From contig JAADVB010000015.1 of NCBI GenBank assembly GCA_023334545.1, forward strand, positions 62,001 to 126,000: a stretch of 64,000 nucleotides of DNA, written 5' to 3'. Below, piece by piece: positions 4,176 to 39,750 of this stretch (within the stretch, counting starts at the first letter, position 1; each line of letters starts with the position of its first letter). Below the pieces are notes generated by a model that did no database searches, was not told the origin of the DNA, and was given only the letters and a program-made list of their open reading frames with translations. Both the position numbers and the translations under genes were made by a program. This DNA comes from Salisapilia sapeloensis CBS 127946 (lineage: Eukaryota; Protista; Oomycota).

Positions 4176-4994
4176 ATGAACAAGCATTTTGTACTACGCA
4201 TATTATTCCTAGTCGCTGTGGCGCTATCGTTGGCGCAAACGTCAGCGCAGCAAGCGGCTGACGGGTCGCTAGACGCAGCAGCAGCGGCAGCAGCAGCAGC
4301 ATCGGCTTCCAGTGATGCCGCCAAGGACACGCCTGCCGCCGCAGCGTCTGCATCTGCATCCAGTGATGCCGCAACACCAACGACCACTCCTCCTGCAGCA
4401 GCAGCAGCAGCAGCAGCATCAGCGTCGAAAGACACACCCACACCGACGCCAAAACCAAATACACCTAATGTAACGCCGAAGAAAGACTCTAGTTCAGCTT
4501 CGTCTGACGGGAAGACTCCTACCAAGACCACACCGACGCCAACACCGACGCCAGTGACACCGGCACCGGCGGCAGCGACACCACCTCCTCCTGCTACGAC
4601 CACCATTGCACCTGAAGCTGCTGCGCCAGCCTTGCTAGACGGATCAGAAAGCAACACCGTCTACGGAACGCTGTCTCCATCCGCTTCGGCTGCTGCCGGC
4701 TCCGGCTCGAACGGCGGCTCAAGCTCGACTGGTGCGTGGCTAGTTCCCGCAATCATAGGCGCAGTACTCGTTGCCGCAGTGATATTTGTGTTTGTATATC
4801 TACAAATGCGGAAAGGAAGTGGTGGAAGACGCGACGACGAGTTTGTCGAAGTTCCGCCGACAAGAGCTTACAGTCGCAATGCGTCGAGAGCGTACTCTTC
4901 TCACAGCCGCGGTGGCGACAGTGCGATGGCCGTGACGCCGAACAAGGTTCCAGACGAGTCGGCAATGGGCCCGCCAATGCATTCTCGAGCTTAG
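4176..4994 (+). CDS. Type I membrane protein with signal peptide, Ala/Pro/Thr-rich mucin-like ectodomain and short cytoplasmic tail
   Basis: ORF 272 aa. Hydrophobic N-terminus LRILFLVAVALSLAQTSA, poly-Ala and TPTP runs, TM AWLVPAIIGAVLVAAVIFVFVYL. Confidence 0.8.
   Translation: MNKHFVLRILFLVAVALSLAQTSAQQAADGSLDAAAAAAAAASASSDAAKDTPAAAASASASSDAATPTTTPPAAAAAAAASASKDTPTPTPKPNTPNVTPKKDSSSASSDGKTPTKTTPTPTPTPVTPAPAAATPPPPATTTIAPEAAAPALLDGSESNTVYGTLSPSASAAAGSGSNGGSSSTGAWLVPAIIGAVLVAAVIFVFVYLQMRKGSGGRRDDEFVEVPPTRAYSRNASRAYSSHSRGGDSAMAVTPNKVPDESAMGPPMHSRA
4395..4418 (+). repeat. (GCA)8 coding microsatellite (poly-Ala); a related imperfect run lies at 4275-4301
   Basis: Directly visible trinucleotide repeats. 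Confidence 0.9.
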
Positions 4995-5335
4995 TATATG
5001 CACTAGACTGATGGACATTAAATGTCGAATGACCGGGCTTCGTGTCAGCAACATGAAGTGAGGGAGTAGTTCCCATGAATCTTGAAAGCATGATATGGCC
5101 CTGTAGCAAAGACTAACAATCGAACAGAATTTTTTTACGGAGAAAGCATGCATCGTTCATCTTGCTCTCGGCAAAACGTACGCCCGAGACGGATTTCTAT
5201 TTATCTTCTAACCTTTGAATCTTCTGCTTCCTGCGATGAAACGTCCTGGAGGAGTTTCGCCCCCATTCCTGTAGAGTCCGTCGCTGGTGCAGTTCCTGAG
5301 TAGATCGGTGTAAGTCTCGAACTGGACGAAACGAG

Positions 5336-8300
5336 ATGGCGACGATCAACTTGGCACATCGGTACATCACTGCTAGATAAGCATAATGTATCCTCCGTTG
5401 CTTATACCGGACGTAGACATATCTTTGGGCACAAGAACGATGTACAGATGGCTGTAGCTCACATCGATGACCAGGCCGTTGTCTATGCTGCTGGGCACTT
5501 GGTGGTGGTGTACCATATCGATGAGCAAAGACAAAAGTTTCTTCCTTGCTCGGAATCGACGGACGGAATCTCTGCGCTAGCATTCTCCGAGAACAAGCGG
5601 TTTCTAGCAGTTGCCGAAGTAAGCAATCGAGCGCTTATCAGTATCATCGATCTGAAGACGCTAAAGAAGCGAAAGGTATTTAGTATCGGCGATGATTTCC
5701 AGGGAAAGACGATCGTCAGTATGGCTTTCAGTCCAGACAGCCAGCATTTACTTGCACAATGTGGAGGTCCTGACTGGACACTTACGTATTGGAACTGGGG
5801 AAAAGGCAAATGCGTGGCGTCTGTGGTAAGTCCGTTGAACGTACCATCTTATGGGCACAGTAGTACGACTTCTACGCATCAATTGTCGTCATACTCCGGC
5901 ATGGGTGCTACCTTTCGACATCTTCCATCGTCAAGTGCAGCTGTAGCCACCGGTGGGCAGAGTTCGATGGGCGCATCCGATGGTGTTTCAGCGACAAACA
6001 GCGGAACGACTTCGCCTACGCTTCTAGCTACCTGCTGCTCCTTTTGTGGCGATGACCCGTCGTTGATCTGCGTTACTGGTCCCAGTTTAGTTCGCTTCTT
6101 TCGAATCGCTGACAGCACCCTGCGTCCATTGCCCAGCACACGTCTTGACGAATCGAGCAATGTTTTGTGCCACACCTGGCTGAAGCAGCGAGATCATGCT
6201 TTAATTGCAGGCACGAGCATGGGCGACTTGCTCCTGTTTAACGAAGGAGAGTTTATAACTCGATTACCAGCATCACCAGGCAAAGAGAATGGTGTGCATT
6301 CAATCATAGCTACATCCAAAGGCGTTGTATGTGGTCTCGCAGATTCGACGATCATCCTGTATGGCGTGAATCTAAGCTGTCGACTGACAAAGCCTTCAGA
6401 GGATAGCACTGACAGTGTCCACACTTCGTCCGGACCCAGTGAAGTTCTATACTTTCAGCGTTCGATTCAACTCGAGGCCGATCCGTATCCGATAACGACG
6501 TTGAGTGTAAATCTGAGCGAAAAGCAGATCGTGGCGTCTCTCGCGAGCAATCAACTCGTTAAATTTACGTATGAGGCGCAACCTGGAGCACTTGGTGGTG
6601 GCATAAGTTCGGCGCTATCGAATGTGGTATCCAGTGTACCCAGCGTAACAGAAGCTAAAGATGAAACACAAACTGTTGCAGACTCCACTTCCCCTGCAAC
6701 TCTGGCTCCAGTTGCTATCGTTCCAAAGGCGGACGATATCAACAATTTGCTCACCGCATTCCACCGTCCAGGAGAATCCCACGGACTGCCATACGTCACT
6801 GGCCTCGACACTTGCGTTCGAAAGCCAATGCTAGTCACCTGTGGCCTTGATCGTTCCGTTCGTATCTGGAACTACTTGGAGCATACTTGCGAATTGACCA
6901 AAACATTTGGAGAAGAAGTATACAGTGTTGCTTGCCATCCGTCCGGACTTCATATTCTTGCTGGGTTTGCCGACAAGTTGCGACTAATGAATGTCCTGAT
7001 GGAAGACCTTCGCGTCGTGAAAGAGTTTTCGGTGAAGGCGTGTCGAGAATGTCAATTTGCCACCGGCGGGCATCTCTTTGCTGCTGTAAATGGAAATACG
7101 ATTCAAGTATTTACTTTGCTGACTGGCGAATTGCTCACCACTTTGCGTGGACATAACGGCAAGGTCCGTAGCTTGCACTGGAATGCAGACGACTCAGGAC
7201 TCTTGTCTGCCGGTATGGACGGTGCTGTCTACCTCTGGGATTTGGATGAATCGAAACGAGACGCCGAGTTCGTTCAAAAGGGCGTACCGTACTACTCAGC
7301 TGTTCTCACGCGTGACGGTAGCACCGTCTATGCCGTCGGACAGGACCGACTGCTGAAAGAGCTTGAATTTCCAACGTCTCAGCTTGTCCATGAGCTGACG
7401 AGTGACGTCGTTGTTGGTCAAATCGCACTCGCTCATTCGCAGCGTCTGCTATTTGCAGCAACTTCAGAACCAGACAAACCAGGTCGCCTTCGCGTCTACC
7501 GACTTCCAATATACGGATCGGCGGATGGCGTTGAAAACGCTGTCTCGAACGCATCCGAGTTTCAGGCGCTGAGTAAACCGATCACACGTCTTCGAGTCTC
7601 GTACGATGACAAGTATCTCTTTTGCTCCGGGGAAGACGGTTGCATCGCGATCTTCGAGATTCGAGATAAAGAAGCTGGTAGAGCTCAAGCAGGACGTGGT
7701 GGTGCATTGGCGACTGGGTTGCAAGCTGTAGGTGGATACTTGAGTTCTACTGGAGGTGGTAGCTCAGGCGGTGGGTTTTCAGAAGAGGTACTGGTAACCA
7801 GAAGTGATTTGGAAGAGAAGCAGACGGTAACTCAGGAGCTAAAGACAAAGGTAGACGAATTGATGCTGCAGAATGAGTATCAGCTACGTCTGAAAGATAT
7901 GACGTACAACGAAGCGTTGAAAGATTTAACGGAGCGATTTACGCATGAAATTGACCAAGAGAAAAACAAGTTTGAATTACTACGTGAAGATAAGAACGAT
8001 CTGGAGATGGAGTACGAAGAGCAGCTGAAGCAACTTGAAGAAAAACACGTTCATGCGCTTCAGGCACTCGAGGCAGACGCACAGCATCGTATCATGACTG
8101 AGGTCGAAAAGTATCAGGAAGCACTTGCCCAACGCGACGCCCAGCGAGCGCACTGGGAGAAAGAACGTGCTAGACTCCAGGCGACGCACGAGCGATATGT
8201 AAGCGAAGTCACGGATGACTTTGAACAACGATTAAGTGAAGAGCATCAACTACGTGTTCAGATGGAAGAAGAGAACGATGAGTTGGACCGTGAATATGCG

Positions 8301-35503: not shown

Positions 35504-36089
35504 GTCTGTAATCGAAATACTGTCTTTTTCTCCGTGTTTTCCACCGATGACTTGACTACTGTATACAACTGGCGGCTGTCTTGCGATCGAACTGATTTTT
35601 TGTAGGAGCACGAGGACTTCAAGTGGCGGCAAGACCTCCATGGACGGCTGGCCATGGGTTCACCATCATCATGCCGTTAACTTATGACACTCGACTGCCG
35701 ATGGATCGTGTGTCCGCTTGGCGACTTGTATCACTGCCTCGGGATACACGAGCCGCTCGTGTCCGGTTGCTGGTAACGCGGAAAAAGAGTAGATGGAGGT
35801 AATTCAGACACTTTGTTTGGTCTATTCAAACTATGCTGGATGGACACTTACAGGAGGTAGATGGATGTACTGCTCTCTGTCATATCGACTAGACGCTTCA
35901 GACGCCAGCAGACCCTTCATCTACCAACTTCAACGCTGCGTGTGTGCTGGTTGAAGTGCGTCTCACTCGACCATGGCCATTCACTCTTGGCGTTTGTATG
36001 GTTGGCACACAACGTTAAACACACGAGTAACAGACCTTGAAATCGTTTGTTCATTCTTTCGAGAATTTGGTCATTCCACTTTAATCCGA

Positions 36090-36770
36090 ATGCTGCTGAC
36101 GCGTGTGCGCTGCGCCCTCCGAGCTCCGTCTACCTCCCGCCTCTTTTCCAGCCAAGCCATGGCCGCTGACTCTGCTCCCCACGACCTCGTCCTCGACAAC
36201 TTTTGCTTGCGCCAGTTTGACGACCCAGAGTACGCTGGCACCAAGATCCGCTTCGACAAGCACGAGTTCGAGCGCAAGATCAACGAAGCGTACCAGGCCA
36301 ACGGCAAGCAACTGACGGACGGATACGCTCCTTTCTGCAAACACCTCTTCATCGAGAACTTCACCGACACGCGGAAGAACGTGGCGGAGATCTCGCAAAG
36401 CAACAGGAAACTGCTCTTGTCGGCCTATGAAGCACGCAGCGAGAACGAACTGCCGGTCTTGGTCCGTTGGTTCCCATCCCACAGCGTCACACCGAAAATT
36501 GCGCAGTACCTGGACGTGATCCTGTACTCGCGTGACCAAGTGCGTGAGGAGAACAAGGCCATGGGCGTCGAATTCGACGAAAGCAGTACGGCTCCGTGGC
36601 GCATCATTTCCGTCAAGGCTCAGGATGTGGACCACGAATTGCCGATGAACCCGACAACGATGATGAGGAATGCGCTCGGCCGAGAGGAAGGCGGGTCCGG
36701 CGTCCCTCTGGATCGCGACGAGTACATGAAGAGCGTCGAGTATTGGAAGAATCACGCGATCGTGAGGTAA
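36090..36770 (+). CDS. DUF3228-family protein
   Basis: FCLRQFDD, DGYAPFCKHLFIENF, YEARSENELPVLVRWF, YLDVILYSR, PMNPTTMMRNALGREEGGSGVPLDR are recalled DUF3228 motifs. INR-like tcattccacttt at 36071. Confidence 0.8.
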   Translation: MLLTRVRCALRAPSTSRLFSSQAMAADSAPHDLVLDNFCLRQFDDPEYAGTKIRFDKHEFERKINEAYQANGKQLTDGYAPFCKHLFIENFTDTRKNVAEISQSNRKLLLSAYEARSENELPVLVRWFPSHSVTPKIAQYLDVILYSRDQVREENKAMGVEFDESSTAPWRIISVKAQDVDHELPMNPTTMMRNALGREEGGSGVPLDRDEYMKSVEYWKNHAIVR

Positions 36771-36810
36771 GGAGAGAATATAGGAAGAGAAGAGAAGACT
36801 GTCTTTCTTT

Positions 36811-38001
36811 TTACTTGCCCGTCTTTTGGAACTCGTCCCAAGCCGTGTTGACGGCTGCGAAGACGCGCTCGGCGATCAGCAGCTGCTCGGCACTGCGGCC
36901 GCTGCTCTTGTCCGGGTGGACGACGATCATGGCCTTTCGGTAATACTTTTTCACGTCGTTCGGCTGCAGGAGCTTGCCCATGTTCACCTCTGTCCATTTG
37001 GAGCCTTCCCACATGACGTTGTGCATAGTCGACAAGAGCGTACGGATGTTCTTCACGCGGCCATTGTCCTCTGCCCAGGCCTTGAGCTTCGGACCGAGGA
37101 CTGTGCCGGCGCTCTCTTTCTGCGCACTTAGTGTCTTGGCGCTCTCCTCTCGCTGCCGCAGCTCATCCCGCGCCTTTGCCATGCCCTGCTGAATCCTCTG
37201 TTCCCTCTCTTCCATGGCCCGTCGAACATCCTCCGACTTGGTTGCTTTGTCCACTTTACTAGCGTCGTAGACGTTCGAGCCGTCGTAGGAAGTGCCTTGG
37301 TACGCCTGCATCTCAGCCATGGTGACAGGACCGACAGTTTGGTTGGTCTCGTCGTCAAATTTGGGAGACTCTTTGTACGCCTGCTTTACAGGCGCTTTCT
37401 TCTTTGTCTGTGGAGGTGCATCGTTCATCAAGTCAATGTTCGAGCCTCCAGATAAAAAGTCTTGGGCTGGGGATGCTTGTGGAGGTTTGGATTTGGCCTC
37501 CTTTGCTGCAGGCCGCTTCTCACTGTACGCTGGCTCTGCCGATGCCTCCCTCCGCTTGGGGCTTGGAGCTCGATACGGAGGGCGCTTGTCACTGTATGTT
37601 GGTTCTGCAGGCGTTTCCCTCCGTTTGGGACTCGGAGCTTGATACGAAGCAGGAGACTGAGGCTTGTACGATGGCTGCATCGGTTTTCGACGGAAGACCA
37701 GTCCTCGTTTAACTGGTCGGCGAAGGCGCAGGAGTTTGCATATCACGCGTCCGTTCACCATAGGAATGCGAGTACTAGGATCAGAGACATCAAGCCAGAA
37801 GAAGGTCTTTTGTCCGGCCTTGGTCGTGTGATTCAGTCGAAAGCGAAAGTGGAATTGAGAGGCGTTTCCGAGGGGAAATGCTCGCTGCACGTCTGCAAAA
37901 GTGACTTCCGAGGAGTCTCCGATGCGGAAGGCATTCGGGTGCGATCGTTCTTCCCCATCCTCACCCTGGACAAAGTAAAAGGCCCACACACCGCTATCCA
38001 T
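36811..38001 (-). CDS. N-terminal DIX domain + C-terminal auxilin-type J-domain protein
   Basis: N: VTFADVQRAF..FHFRFR..WLDVSDPSTRIPMVNGRVICKLL. C: KNIRTLLSTMHNVMWEGSKW..VKKYYRKAMIVVHPDK..IAERVF..VNTAWDEF. Confidence 0.85.
   Translation of the reverse strand: MDSGVWAFYFVQGEDGEERSHPNAFRIGDSSEVTFADVQRAFPLGNASQFHFRFRLNHTTKAGQKTFFWLDVSDPSTRIPMVNGRVICKLLRLRRPVKRGLVFRRKPMQPSYKPQSPASYQAPSPKRRETPAEPTYSDKRPPYRAPSPKRREASAEPAYSEKRPAAKEAKSKPPQASPAQDFLSGGSNIDLMNDAPPQTKKKAPVKQAYKESPKFDDETNQTVGPVTMAEMQAYQGTSYDGSNVYDASKVDKATKSEDVRRAMEEREQRIQQGMAKARDELRQREESAKTLSAQKESAGTVLGPKLKAWAEDNGRVKNIRTLLSTMHNVMWEGSKWTEVNMGKLLQPNDVKKYYRKAMIVVHPDKSSGRSAEQLLIAERVFAAVNTAWDEFQKTGK
37512..37645 (-). repeat. Two imperfect 69-bp tandem coding repeats (Y[QR]APSPKRRExxAEPxYSxKRP)
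   Basis: Visible at DNA and protein level, units ~37512-37576 and ~37581-37645. Confidence 0.85.
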
Positions 38002-38212
38002 GACACTTTTTACAATTTATGCGTCTAGAGTCGTATCAGTTTTGTTGTACAAGACATACAATATTCAAGTGAATTGACGAGGAAGCGTGGTATCTCGAAC
38101 GCGATCTTCAAGAGAAGGATACTTGCTGGTAAGCTGCGTATTGATCCGACTGAATGATCGGATGTGCCATTTGCAGCTGGTGCGAGTACGTTATATATAT
38201 TTATGGCTTTGT

Positions 38213-39750
38213 CTAGGGGAATTTGTCGTACACGCCAAAATCGCTTCTAGTCGACACCCGGGAGGCCTTGGAGAAGCGCAACCACGCCAGCACGAGAACA
38301 CTGCAGCTGGCGCTGACGACGAAGACGCCGTCAAAATAGAGCTGAAAGCCATCAAAGTCAATACCTCCAACGACTTGGTCGATGTGGTCCCGATGCTCCT
38401 GCTTTAAGTTCATGCGCATGAGGACAAAGGCCGATACAAAGTACATGCCCATGAGGTGCGCAAACACGAGGACGACGCTGTTGGACCAGACGATGCTCGA
38501 CCACTCACGAAACACTTTCACGAGTGTCACCAAGAACCCTCTTGTCTGCGTGATCACCAGCACGCCCACAAGAGCGAGAGACGCCATCTCTGACACCTCC
38601 CGGACGTCCACGACCAAGGACGCGTCCGGGTATATGTACAAGAGCTTTTCGATCGCATCCGAGATCGGATCCTTGTCTCTATTCCGCCGAAAGACGACGT
38701 TGGCGGTGCTCGTGACCATCTTGTAGAGGCAAAAGGCAGACAGGACGTAGCCGAAGAAGTTGAGCATCCGACCCTGGACCGTTCGTGCCTTTTGTGATCG
38801 CATCTGAATGTCCCGAAGGTCGTGTAACTCGAGAAACATTTCTCTACCTAGGTTGTTTAGTGTCTTGATCTCTGCTTTGAGTCCTTCGACGAAATCTTGA
38901 TGACTGCTTTCCGATGGCGCACGCAAGGGAGAAGGTGTGAGGGCGTTCCAGACGCGAGTAGACAACGAAAGGGTCTCTGCTTTATCATGACGGTGCACTC
39001 GTCGCTCTAAACTCAATCGCTTCTTTTTAGCGGATAGTAGCTGTAGGTTGTGTAGAAGCCTCCTCTCCAACGACTCGATGTCGTCCTCAGCGATATGCTG
39101 CCAGCAAAATGAGAGGTATTCGTATGGACAGTTGACGGCACCGAAGCCTGATAGCGTGGCCATCACCACGACACCAAGAAGTCCTACACGACTGACGGCA
39201 TGTCGGATGGAGAAAATGGCTATTGAACATGAAAGAATGAGATTGGGATGCGGTCATGACACAAGGATAGGAACGTACTCTGGAATGAAAGGGGCACGGC
39301 GATTTCACCATCGAGCAAAGCTCCAAGTTTCCAGAATGAGGGTAAGTAGATGATAAAGGTGCATGCGGCTACGATGAAGGAAGTCTTGCGTCCAAGGCCG
39401 TACTCTCTGCTTACGGTGAAGAAGAGGGCGAGAGGAATGAAGACTATGAGGAGGTACGTGATCACGCCGAGATTCACTCGCCATCCCCACAGTCTAGATC
39501 TGGATGAAAGCAGTCCTGTCACTTCGCACAGGATGAGTTGAGCTAGACTGAGAGAGAAAGTGAAGGATGCCCCGAAGAGCAGTCGCGGGACCGGACTTCG
39601 CACTTCATAGTCGCGAAAGAGTCGAGCGGAAAAGAAATGCCGGGCTATGAGGTAGAAGACAACCCATCCACCGCATATGACGGTCAGGTCTCGCACTGGG
39701 AGCGTCGGAGCCGTCGCGAGTAGCTCCGGACTCAAGCTCACCTCTTGCAT
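38213..39750 (-). CDS. GPR89: Golgi pH regulator / GPR89 (GTG-type) multi-TM protein; 3 exons
   Basis: LFGASFTFSLSLAQLILCEV, SRVSVVGLLGVVVMATLSGFGAVNCPYEYL, GRMLNFFGYVLSAFCLYKM..NVVFRR..KDPIS, GMYFVSAFVLMRMNL. Confidence 0.9.

Follow-up and report, generated by a model that had tools for sequence, protein, structure and literature searches.

We analysed a window of 64,000 nucleotides from the oomycete Salisapilia sapeloensis CBS 127946 (contig JAADVB010000015.1, positions 62,001 to 126,000 of the forward strand) and followed up one open reading frame (ORF) in it, for which an earlier note made from the sequence of the window had proposed a DIX domain fused to an auxilin-type J-domain. Coordinates are those of the window unless another locus is named. 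The ORF list gives a complete, intronless coding sequence on the minus strand at 36811..38001, stop codon included, which starts with ATG and encodes a protein of 396 amino acids (aa), an ortholog of the DARTAGNAN or DDP proteins. Read from its N-terminus, the protein consists of a DIX domain, a basic tail, a long linker with short conserved motifs, a predicted charged helix and a J-domain. We refer to it as the DIX-J protein.

Contigs from four public runs, which represent three samples of a single study, match the genome exactly, span 36379-38004 and cross the ORF without any joint. In these same contigs the introns of both neighbouring genes have been removed, one at 35797-35858 (GT..AG) and the other at 39220-39278 (CT..AC, to be read as GT..AG on the minus strand), and the contigs are therefore derived from spliced RNA. 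Since RNA-derived contigs show no joint inside the ORF, the DIX-J gene is intronless and transcribed. The contigs end 3 bases upstream of the ATG, and in the alignment all homologs start at the position of this ATG; none of the contig pieces listed covers 38005-38122 in any of the four runs. We conclude that the DIX-J ORF is a real, expressed oomycete gene.

The DIX domain occupies aa 4-93 (37723..37992, minus strand). The Pfam model PF00778 matches aa 9-90 and scores 22.9 bits on the whole protein, barely above its curated cut-off of 22.2 bits, and 26.8 bits (E 4.7e-6) when the N-terminal 102 aa are searched alone. When a profile of 25 DIX domains of the family (alignment A1) was searched against the PDB it returned the DIX domains of Dvl1, Dvl2 and Axin. 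An AlphaFold2 (AF2) model of aa 1-107 built on the family alignment had a mean predicted local distance difference test score (pLDDT) of 90.1 and showed the order b1-b2-a1-b3-b4-b5, with b1 at aa 5-12, b2 at 23-28 (within HPNAFRIG, aa 21-28), a1 at 35-41, b3 at 50-59 (FHFRFR), b4 at 65-71 (KTFFWLD) and b5 at 85-92. In a Foldseek search of the PDB with this model the first 18 ranks were all DIX domains, led by Dvl1 (3pz8, E 4e-5, TM-score TMt 0.77) and followed by Dvl2, Ccd1, Axin and the SOSEKI protein SOK4. From rank 19 onward the matches were other beta-grasp or staphylokinase-type folds with far lower TM-scores.

These results bear on the possibility that the N-terminus is a generic beta-grasp domain of the ubiquitin-like or PB1 type that resembles DIX by chance, and that the ORF is mis-annotated and no real gene. 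The narrow margin of the whole-protein Pfam score would fit such a resemblance. However, the domain alone scores 26.8 bits, and neither a PB1 domain nor ubiquitin itself was found among the 50 Foldseek matches listed. The earlier note had named a PB1 or ubiquitin-like fold as an outcome that would overturn its DIX assignment, and the match list answers this for the fold, though not for polymerisation. The domain is furthermore kept from oomycetes to brown algae, and the contigs of spliced RNA cover the gene. We therefore regard chance resemblance as refuted and give it almost no weight. The alignment with Dishevelled that had been made by eye was reproduced in the hidden Markov model (HMM) alignment to Dvl1, in which VTLADF.., YKFFFK and LPCFNGRVV of Dvl1 stand opposite VTFADVQRAF, FHFRFR and IPMVNGRVI.

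The domain shares with the DIX domains of Dvl, Axin, Ccd1 and SOSEKI the fold of five strands and one helix (TMt 0.64-0.79) and the sequence blocks of a1, b3 and b5. It differs from them in that identity is only 12-21% and in that the DIX-J protein carries no PDZ, DEP, RGS or other domain of the Wnt pathway. Twelve residues are invariant in the DIX domains of the family (Y9, Q12, N23, P43, H51, F52, R53, R55, W69, P80, K89 and L91), and the elements conserved best are b2 (HPNAF) and b4 (TFFWLD). In filaments of Dvl and Axin these two strands form the head and tail surfaces.

At the other end of the protein, an auxilin-type J-domain extends over aa 295-396 (36814..37119, minus strand), with NIRTLLSTMH at aa 318-327 and the His-Pro-Asp (HPD) motif at aa 362-364 (36910-36918). 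Searching the PDB with phmmer, we found that aa 293-395 match the J-domain of bovine auxilin (1xi5, 1n4c and 1nz6) with E values of 1.5e-22 to 4e-22 and that of Arabidopsis JAC1 (3ag7) with 6e-18, while canonical DnaJ domains of the DNAJB type reached only 0.2-0.6. The structural comparison agreed with this. An AF2 model of aa 232-396 (pLDDT 84.3) has a long helix that runs into the J-domain, and the seven top Foldseek matches in the PDB were all J-domains of auxilin or JAC1, whose crystal structures gave TMt values of 0.82-0.86 and a root-mean-square deviation (rmsd) of 1.8-1.9 Å; canonical J-domains had E values above 1. Identity is 47-48% to bovine auxilin over about 95 residues and 36% to JAC1 (rmsd 1.8 Å). 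In the family alignment A2 the HPDK residues are invariant (H131, P132, D133 and K134 of the alignment), and the basic helix II pattern KKxYRKA is kept. Sequence and fold thus both place the C-terminal J-domain in the auxilin/GAK subfamily, and its HPD is intact, as the earlier note had said.

The generic Pfam DnaJ model scores 22-23.6 bits on this region, below its cut-off of 27.8, which we explain by auxilin-type J-domains having diverged from that model. Taken by itself this score could be used to dispute the J-domain, and we set that argument aside since the auxilin matches from phmmer and Foldseek are strong. To our knowledge every characterised auxilin-type J-protein acts on clathrin.

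As in auxilin and GAK (DNAJC6 and DNAJC26), Swa2 and the plant auxilin-like proteins including JAC1, the J-domain stands at the C-terminus, behind a putatively disordered region with short motifs. Pfam found only DIX, DnaJ and a sub-threshold DUF7900 match in the protein, and no PTEN-like or C2, kinase or TPR domain. The protein would therefore be auxilin-like in its proposed action, but its architecture is not that of a canonical auxilin, GAK or Swa2: unlike auxilin and GAK it lacks a PTEN-like or C2 domain, unlike GAK it lacks a kinase, and unlike Swa2 it lacks TPR and UBA domains. Its N-terminal module is instead DIX, and it has one DLM motif in place of multiple clathrin motifs of the canonical DLL and DPF type.

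We then asked how many such J-domains the assembly (22.4 Mb in 1365 contigs) encodes. A profile of the C-terminus of the family, which included a Trichinella auxilin, found the DIX-J gene at 1e-76, while the next matches, at 0.0016 or worse, covered only the generic core of helix II, HPD and helix III. The DIX-J gene is the only one in the 22.4-Mb assembly to encode an auxilin-type J-domain. Clathrin heavy chain is encoded as well, in a frame of 1704 aa with seven repeats. The second match of a search with a single J-domain sequence, on contig C771, was considered as a possible auxilin and rejected, as its ORF combines TPR-like repeats with a canonical HPD-bearing J-domain of the DNAJC7 type.

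Between the two domains lie several conserved segments, all on the minus strand. The alignment shows a basic tail directly after DIX, RRPVKRGLVFRRKP (aa 94-107, 37681..37722), which is kept as R-P-x-K-x-G-L-x-[FL]-[RK]-R-[KR]-P in oomycete and ochrophyte members. It is followed by a linker rich in Pro, Ala, Ser and Lys (aa 108-256, 37234..37680), assigned by composition and poorly conserved outside its motifs in the alignment. The published description of DARTAGNAN proteins has an intrinsically disordered region bearing short linear motifs (SLiMs) (PMC12077222), and it is on this family description that we take the linker to be disordered. Tandem Repeats Finder detected in it a 69-bp tandem duplication (37510..37646; 2.0 copies, 79% DNA match). 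Its product is two units of 23 aa (aa 123-145 and 146-168) that are identical at 15 of 23 positions, and each unit contains [TA]YS[DE]KRP and SPKR, a site of the CDK type (S/T-P-x-K/R). Since other members of the family have a single RPxKYSD motif at the same place, the duplication is specific to this lineage.

An alignment block and a motif scan placed two adjacent motifs, QDFLSGG (aa 180-186) and NIDLMND (aa 188-194), at 37420..37464. The first has the family form [FL]EDFLSGG. The second corresponds to [DN][VI][ND]LM in oomycetes and is aligned with DLLNF[DG] in ochrophytes, where LLNFD of Choristocarpus and Phaeothamnion matches the clathrin-box pattern L-phi-x-phi-[DE]. Judged from the alignment, this DLM/DLL(NFD) motif, which oomycetes and brown algae have in common, is the strongest candidate in the protein for contact with clathrin. 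Further along, PKFDDETNQTVGPVTMAEM (aa 213-231, 37309..37365) is near-invariant in all oomycete members of the alignment as PKF[DE]DD.GQTVGPV[TS][ML]AEM, and the stretch from DGSNVYD to VDKATKSEDVRRAMEERE (aa 240-267, 37201..37284) runs into the long helix. The linker motifs that the oomycetes have in common are thus the basic tail, RPxKYSD, [FL]EDFLSGG, [DN][VI][ND]LM, PKFDDDxGQTVGPVTMAEM and DGSNVYN..VDKSTKS..VRRAMEERE. A DFLSSMDPLA motif found in Peronosporales and Albugo is absent from the DIX-J protein in the alignment, as it is in Saprolegniales. The long helix itself is predicted by AF2 as a charged helix of 56 residues that leads into the J-domain (aa 257-312, 37066..37233; residues 26-81 of the 165 in the construct, pLDDT 76-93). 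The DUF7900 match of Pfam falls over it (aa 272-323, 37033-37188) with 17-20 bits against a cut-off of 27.

A word-based protein search found 77 homologs that share this layout, several of them with a precomputed PF00778 match or the UniRef name 'DIX domain-containing protein'. Full-length homologs of Peronosporales, Pythiales, Albugo and Saprolegniales, with E values from 1e-133 to 1e-81, 98-99% coverage and mostly 44-53% identity, belong to Phytophthora, Peronospora, Plasmopara, Bremia, Hyaloperonospora, Globisporangium, Pythium, Lagenidium, Albugo, Saprolegnia, Achlya, Thraustotheca and Aphanomyces, and more distant members with both domains were found in the ochrophytes Ectocarpus, Choristocarpus, Phaeothamnion and Chrysoparadoxa. 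The gene is conserved throughout the oomycete orders and in ochrophyte algae. No match exceeds 53% full-length identity, which makes the DIX-J protein a divergent member. A maximum-likelihood tree places it within the peronosporalean clade (support 98/99), where its branch is long (0.85) and only weakly joined as sister to Phytophthora and the downy mildews.

This family has been described. A eukaryote-wide screen for DIX domains defined four classes specific to the SAR supergroup (stramenopiles, alveolates and Rhizaria), called Musketeers, of which ATHOS consists of DIX only, PORTHOS of DIX and a NAK-like kinase, ARAMIS of DIX and ELMO, and DARTAGNAN of DIX and DnaJ with a disordered, SLiM-bearing region in between (Kostareli et al. 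2025, mBio, PMC12077222). DARTAGNAN of Phytophthora palmivora (PLTG_06708) has the same architecture as the DIX-J protein, with a DIX-like domain at the N-terminus, a disordered SLiM-bearing linker and a C-terminal J-domain with HPD. Orthology is indicated by identities of 47-53% over 99% of the protein to members from Phytophthora, Globisporangium, Albugo and Saprolegnia together with the position in the tree. The DARTAGNAN entries in supplementary file 1 of PMC12077222 include proteins of Aphanomyces astaci and Phytophthora nicotianae, and the A. astaci entry corresponds in its N-terminus and motifs to one of our homologs (P0052, E 7e-102 against the DIX-J protein). Compared with the DARTAGNAN proteins of Peronosporales the DIX-J protein is shorter (396 against about 440-500 aa), lacks DFLSSMDPLA, has its YSD/KRP motif duplicated over 69 bp and forms the long branch of the tree. 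In PMC12077222 the J-domain of DARTAGNAN was overlaid on DnaJC12, whereas here it is of auxilin type; the word auxilin was not found in that paper, and its supplements name neither auxilin nor clathrin.

A second member comes from Toxoplasma gondii. The DIX-DnaJ protein TgDDP (TGGT1_261410) was assigned to the DARTAGNAN class by its authors, is located mainly at the trans-Golgi network (TGN) and is essential for daughter budding (mBio 2026, PMC13753751). It pulls down the heavy and light chains of clathrin, Hsp70 and the DIX-only protein TgDCP, and co-localises with clathrin light chain, and its authors proposed an auxilin-like role (PMC13753751). TgDDP resembles the DIX-J protein in having DIX and a C-terminal J-domain, and its place at the TGN, its immunoprecipitation-mass spectrometry (IP-MS) partners clathrin and Hsp70 and its dimer fit the mechanism proposed here. 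It differs in being apicomplexan, in that its DIX domain begins near residue 120 and in a failed-budding phenotype that is parasite-specific, and it is absent from the 77 homologs of our word-based search. A literature search on DARTAGNAN and DIX found nothing beyond these two papers. Because the same architecture was published as DARTAGNAN in 2025 and as TgDDP in 2026, the DIX-J protein is an ordinary, though divergent, ortholog of a known family, and the fusion of the two domains is not new.

Our data point to an auxilin-like Hsc70 co-chaperone for clathrin coats in which DIX is a targeting or concentrating module that takes the place of the PTEN or kinase module, and which acts in TGN or endosomal and possibly plasma-membrane traffic. 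We consider this reading probable. In the mechanism that we infer, which takes in uncoating activity, the function of the linker motifs, polymerisation and the site in hyphae, the HPD of the J-domain would, like that of auxilin, GAK and Swa2, stimulate the ATPase activity of cytosolic Hsc70 at clathrin coats, and linker motifs including DLM/DLL(NFD) would bind clathrin or its adaptors. DIX would replace the PTEN-like or kinase targeting module of the auxilins, and its homotypic contacts, together with heterotypic DIX-DIX contacts to ATHOS, PORTHOS (a NAK-type kinase) and ARAMIS (an ELMO protein), would raise the local concentration. Clathrin traffic at the trans-Golgi and endosomes and at the plasma membrane would be the probable place of action.

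Several points weigh against this reading. In the HMM alignment two of the four classical polymerisation residues of Dvl2 are replaced non-conservatively, Y27 by N23 and K68 by W69, and both replacements are invariant within the family. TgDDP was found by size-exclusion chromatography combined with light scattering at multiple angles (SEC-MALS) as monomer and dimer, and nothing larger than a dimer was seen (PMC13753751). The DIX-J protein's own NIDLMND lies outside the strict clathrin-box pattern, and a strict scan of the protein for the clathrin box, DPF, FxDxF and NPF gave no canonical box and a single DLM only. Finally, a second auxilin could exist in unassembled sequence, since an assembly of 22.4 Mb in 1365 contigs may be incomplete.

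The first two points concern self-association. The other two Dvl2 interface residues are changed conservatively, F43 to V38 and V67 to F68. With b2 and b4 conserved and Y27 and K68 replaced, the interface is conserved within the family yet unlike that of Dvl residue for residue. A prediction of a complex of two copies of aa 1-100 scored 0.00 against a mark of 0.32, with no alignment used and no controls run, and counts neither for nor against self-association. Among relatives, heterotypic DIX contacts were reported between ATHOS and DARTAGNAN (PMC12077222) and between TgDCP and TgDDP (PMC13753751), so that what experiments have shown is a dimer and DIX partners of other kinds rather than filaments (PMC12077222, PMC13753751). 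Association of the DIX domain with itself and with other DIX domains is likely, and true head-to-tail polymerisation is possible.

The interpretation in the earlier note is thus partly supported. Both of its domain calls were correct. Its proposal of an auxilin-like clathrin co-chaperone concentrated by DIX gains indirect support from TgDDP, through the pull-down of clathrin chains and Hsp70, the co-localisation with clathrin light chain and the dimer; the polymer in that proposal is not supported, as TgDDP was seen only as monomer and dimer and two of the four classical Dvl2 interface residues are replaced. The hyphal tip as the site of action is not supported either. The sole localisation of a family member, that of TgDDP, is the TGN, and the partner ATHOS sits near the ventral groove of the zoospore (PMC12077222).

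The place of ATHOS bears on a different role, in which a DIX complex, for example at the hyphal tip, the base of the flagellum or the ventral groove of the zoospore, would serve as a scaffold for polarity or motility and the J-domain would bring Hsp70 to clients other than clathrin. Such a role would join the polarity at the tip proposed in the earlier note with the hypothesis of Kostareli et al. on motility. In keeping with this, DARTAGNAN co-purifies with ATHOS, 97% of the SAR species that carry Musketeer proteins have a motile stage, and the DIX proteins of animals and plants mark polar sites (PMC12077222). However, the J-domain belongs specifically to the auxilin subfamily, whose characterised members act on clathrin, and TgDDP is at the TGN and pulls down clathrin (PMC13753751). 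Musketeer genes are moreover expressed constitutively and persist in non-motile downy mildews (PMC12077222). On balance we regard such a scaffold as improbable.

Genes for the DIX partners are present in the same genome. A PORTHOS-type gene lies on the minus strand of contig C634, with a DIX exon at 5770-6156 and a kinase ORF of 424 aa at 4351-5625 of locus L005 and an apparent intron between them. Its DIX exon scores 20.2 bits with Pfam and 2.8e-8 with the family profile, and the best PDB matches of its kinase are of the NAK group: STK16 (2e-35), GAK (3e-25), AAK1 (1e-22) and BIKE. An ARAMIS-type gene on contig C1256 (L007 703-1809, minus strand) is a single ORF of 368 aa with DIX (family profile, 1.3e-11) and ELMO (1.4e-18). 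On contig C516 (L009 1132-1437 and 1361-1774, plus strand) there is a weak ATHOS-like candidate, a DIX-like sequence split by an apparent intron that reads ..FPLPGSFHFRFKTPFEGTYG and ..TVWLDVLHDEDPVPEYNGMIISKVARM.. and continues into a tail rich in Pro, Ser and Asp; its family-profile E value is 0.004 and it has no Pfam match. The genome thus encodes PORTHOS and ARAMIS, and from its sequence the third gene is a weak candidate for ATHOS.

Beside the ARAMIS-type gene, at L007 17-667 on the plus strand, we observed an ORF of 216 aa rich in Glu and Arg that ends in ..GDLLDFELDNEDIEFDEEDD, a tail with both an acidic cluster and a canonical clathrin-box-like LLDFE.

The PORTHOS-type gene allows a refinement of the auxilin-like reading, in which DARTAGNAN as the J-domain half and PORTHOS as the NAK-kinase half would pair through DIX and so rebuild GAK, with phosphorylation of adaptors by one and uncoating through Hsc70 by the other. 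This idea of a split GAK was raised as speculation by Kostareli et al. 2025 (PMC12077222). Both genes occur in this genome, the kinase of PORTHOS is in the NAK group and the J-domain is of the auxilin/GAK type, and heterotypic DIX contacts do occur (ATHOS with DARTAGNAN, TgDCP with TgDDP). Two observations weaken the idea: the kinase resembles STK16, a Golgi kinase, more closely than GAK, and PORTHOS is not among the reported partners of ATHOS in the pull-down, which are ARAMIS and DARTAGNAN only (PMC12077222). We think a split GAK possible but rather unlikely.

A wider proposal can be made from the DIX-J gene being the only auxilin-type gene of the assembly. The sole auxilin of oomycetes, and perhaps of stramenopiles and apicomplexans as a whole, may be driven by DIX, with DIX standing in for the lipid-sensing PTEN module and uncoating dosed by the co-assembly of DIX with PORTHOS and other Musketeers, as a split-GAK condensate. 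We put this forward tentatively, as an idea with somewhat less than even chances. Its pieces have each been raised separately in the literature as speculation.

A fusion of DIX and an auxilin-type J-domain would be an unusual way of targeting Hsp70-driven uncoating of clathrin. Given that TgDDP is essential in Toxoplasma, drugs or control measures against oomycete and apicomplexan pathogens could plausibly be aimed at the family. The architecture, the distribution over the SAR supergroup and the analogy with auxilin were in print in 2025-2026; neither the auxilin-type identity of the DARTAGNAN J-domain nor its status as a sole gene is shown in that literature. Our analysis adds the assignment of the J-domain to the auxilin type by sequence and fold and its being the only such domain in the assembly. 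It also adds the clathrin-box-like motif kept from oomycetes to brown algae, the lineage-specific duplication of the SPKR-bearing linker unit and the partner genes in the same genome.

On either side lie genes for a homolog of the Golgi pH regulator and for a DUF3228 protein, neither of which evidently bears on the DIX-J protein. Upstream, at 38213-39279 on the minus strand, lies the gene for a membrane protein of the Golgi pH regulator/ABA_GPCR family (PF12430 6e-30, PF12537 1e-13), with the 59-nt intron at 39220-39278 and no evident link in function. The convergent neighbour on the plus strand (35600-36811) encodes the DUF3228 protein (E 5e-89) and contains the 62-nt GT..AG intron at 35797-35858. 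Its stop (36770) and that of the DIX-J gene (36811) are 40 bp apart, and in two of the runs (X1 and X2) a single contig spans both genes, which suggests that their 3' ends probably overlap.

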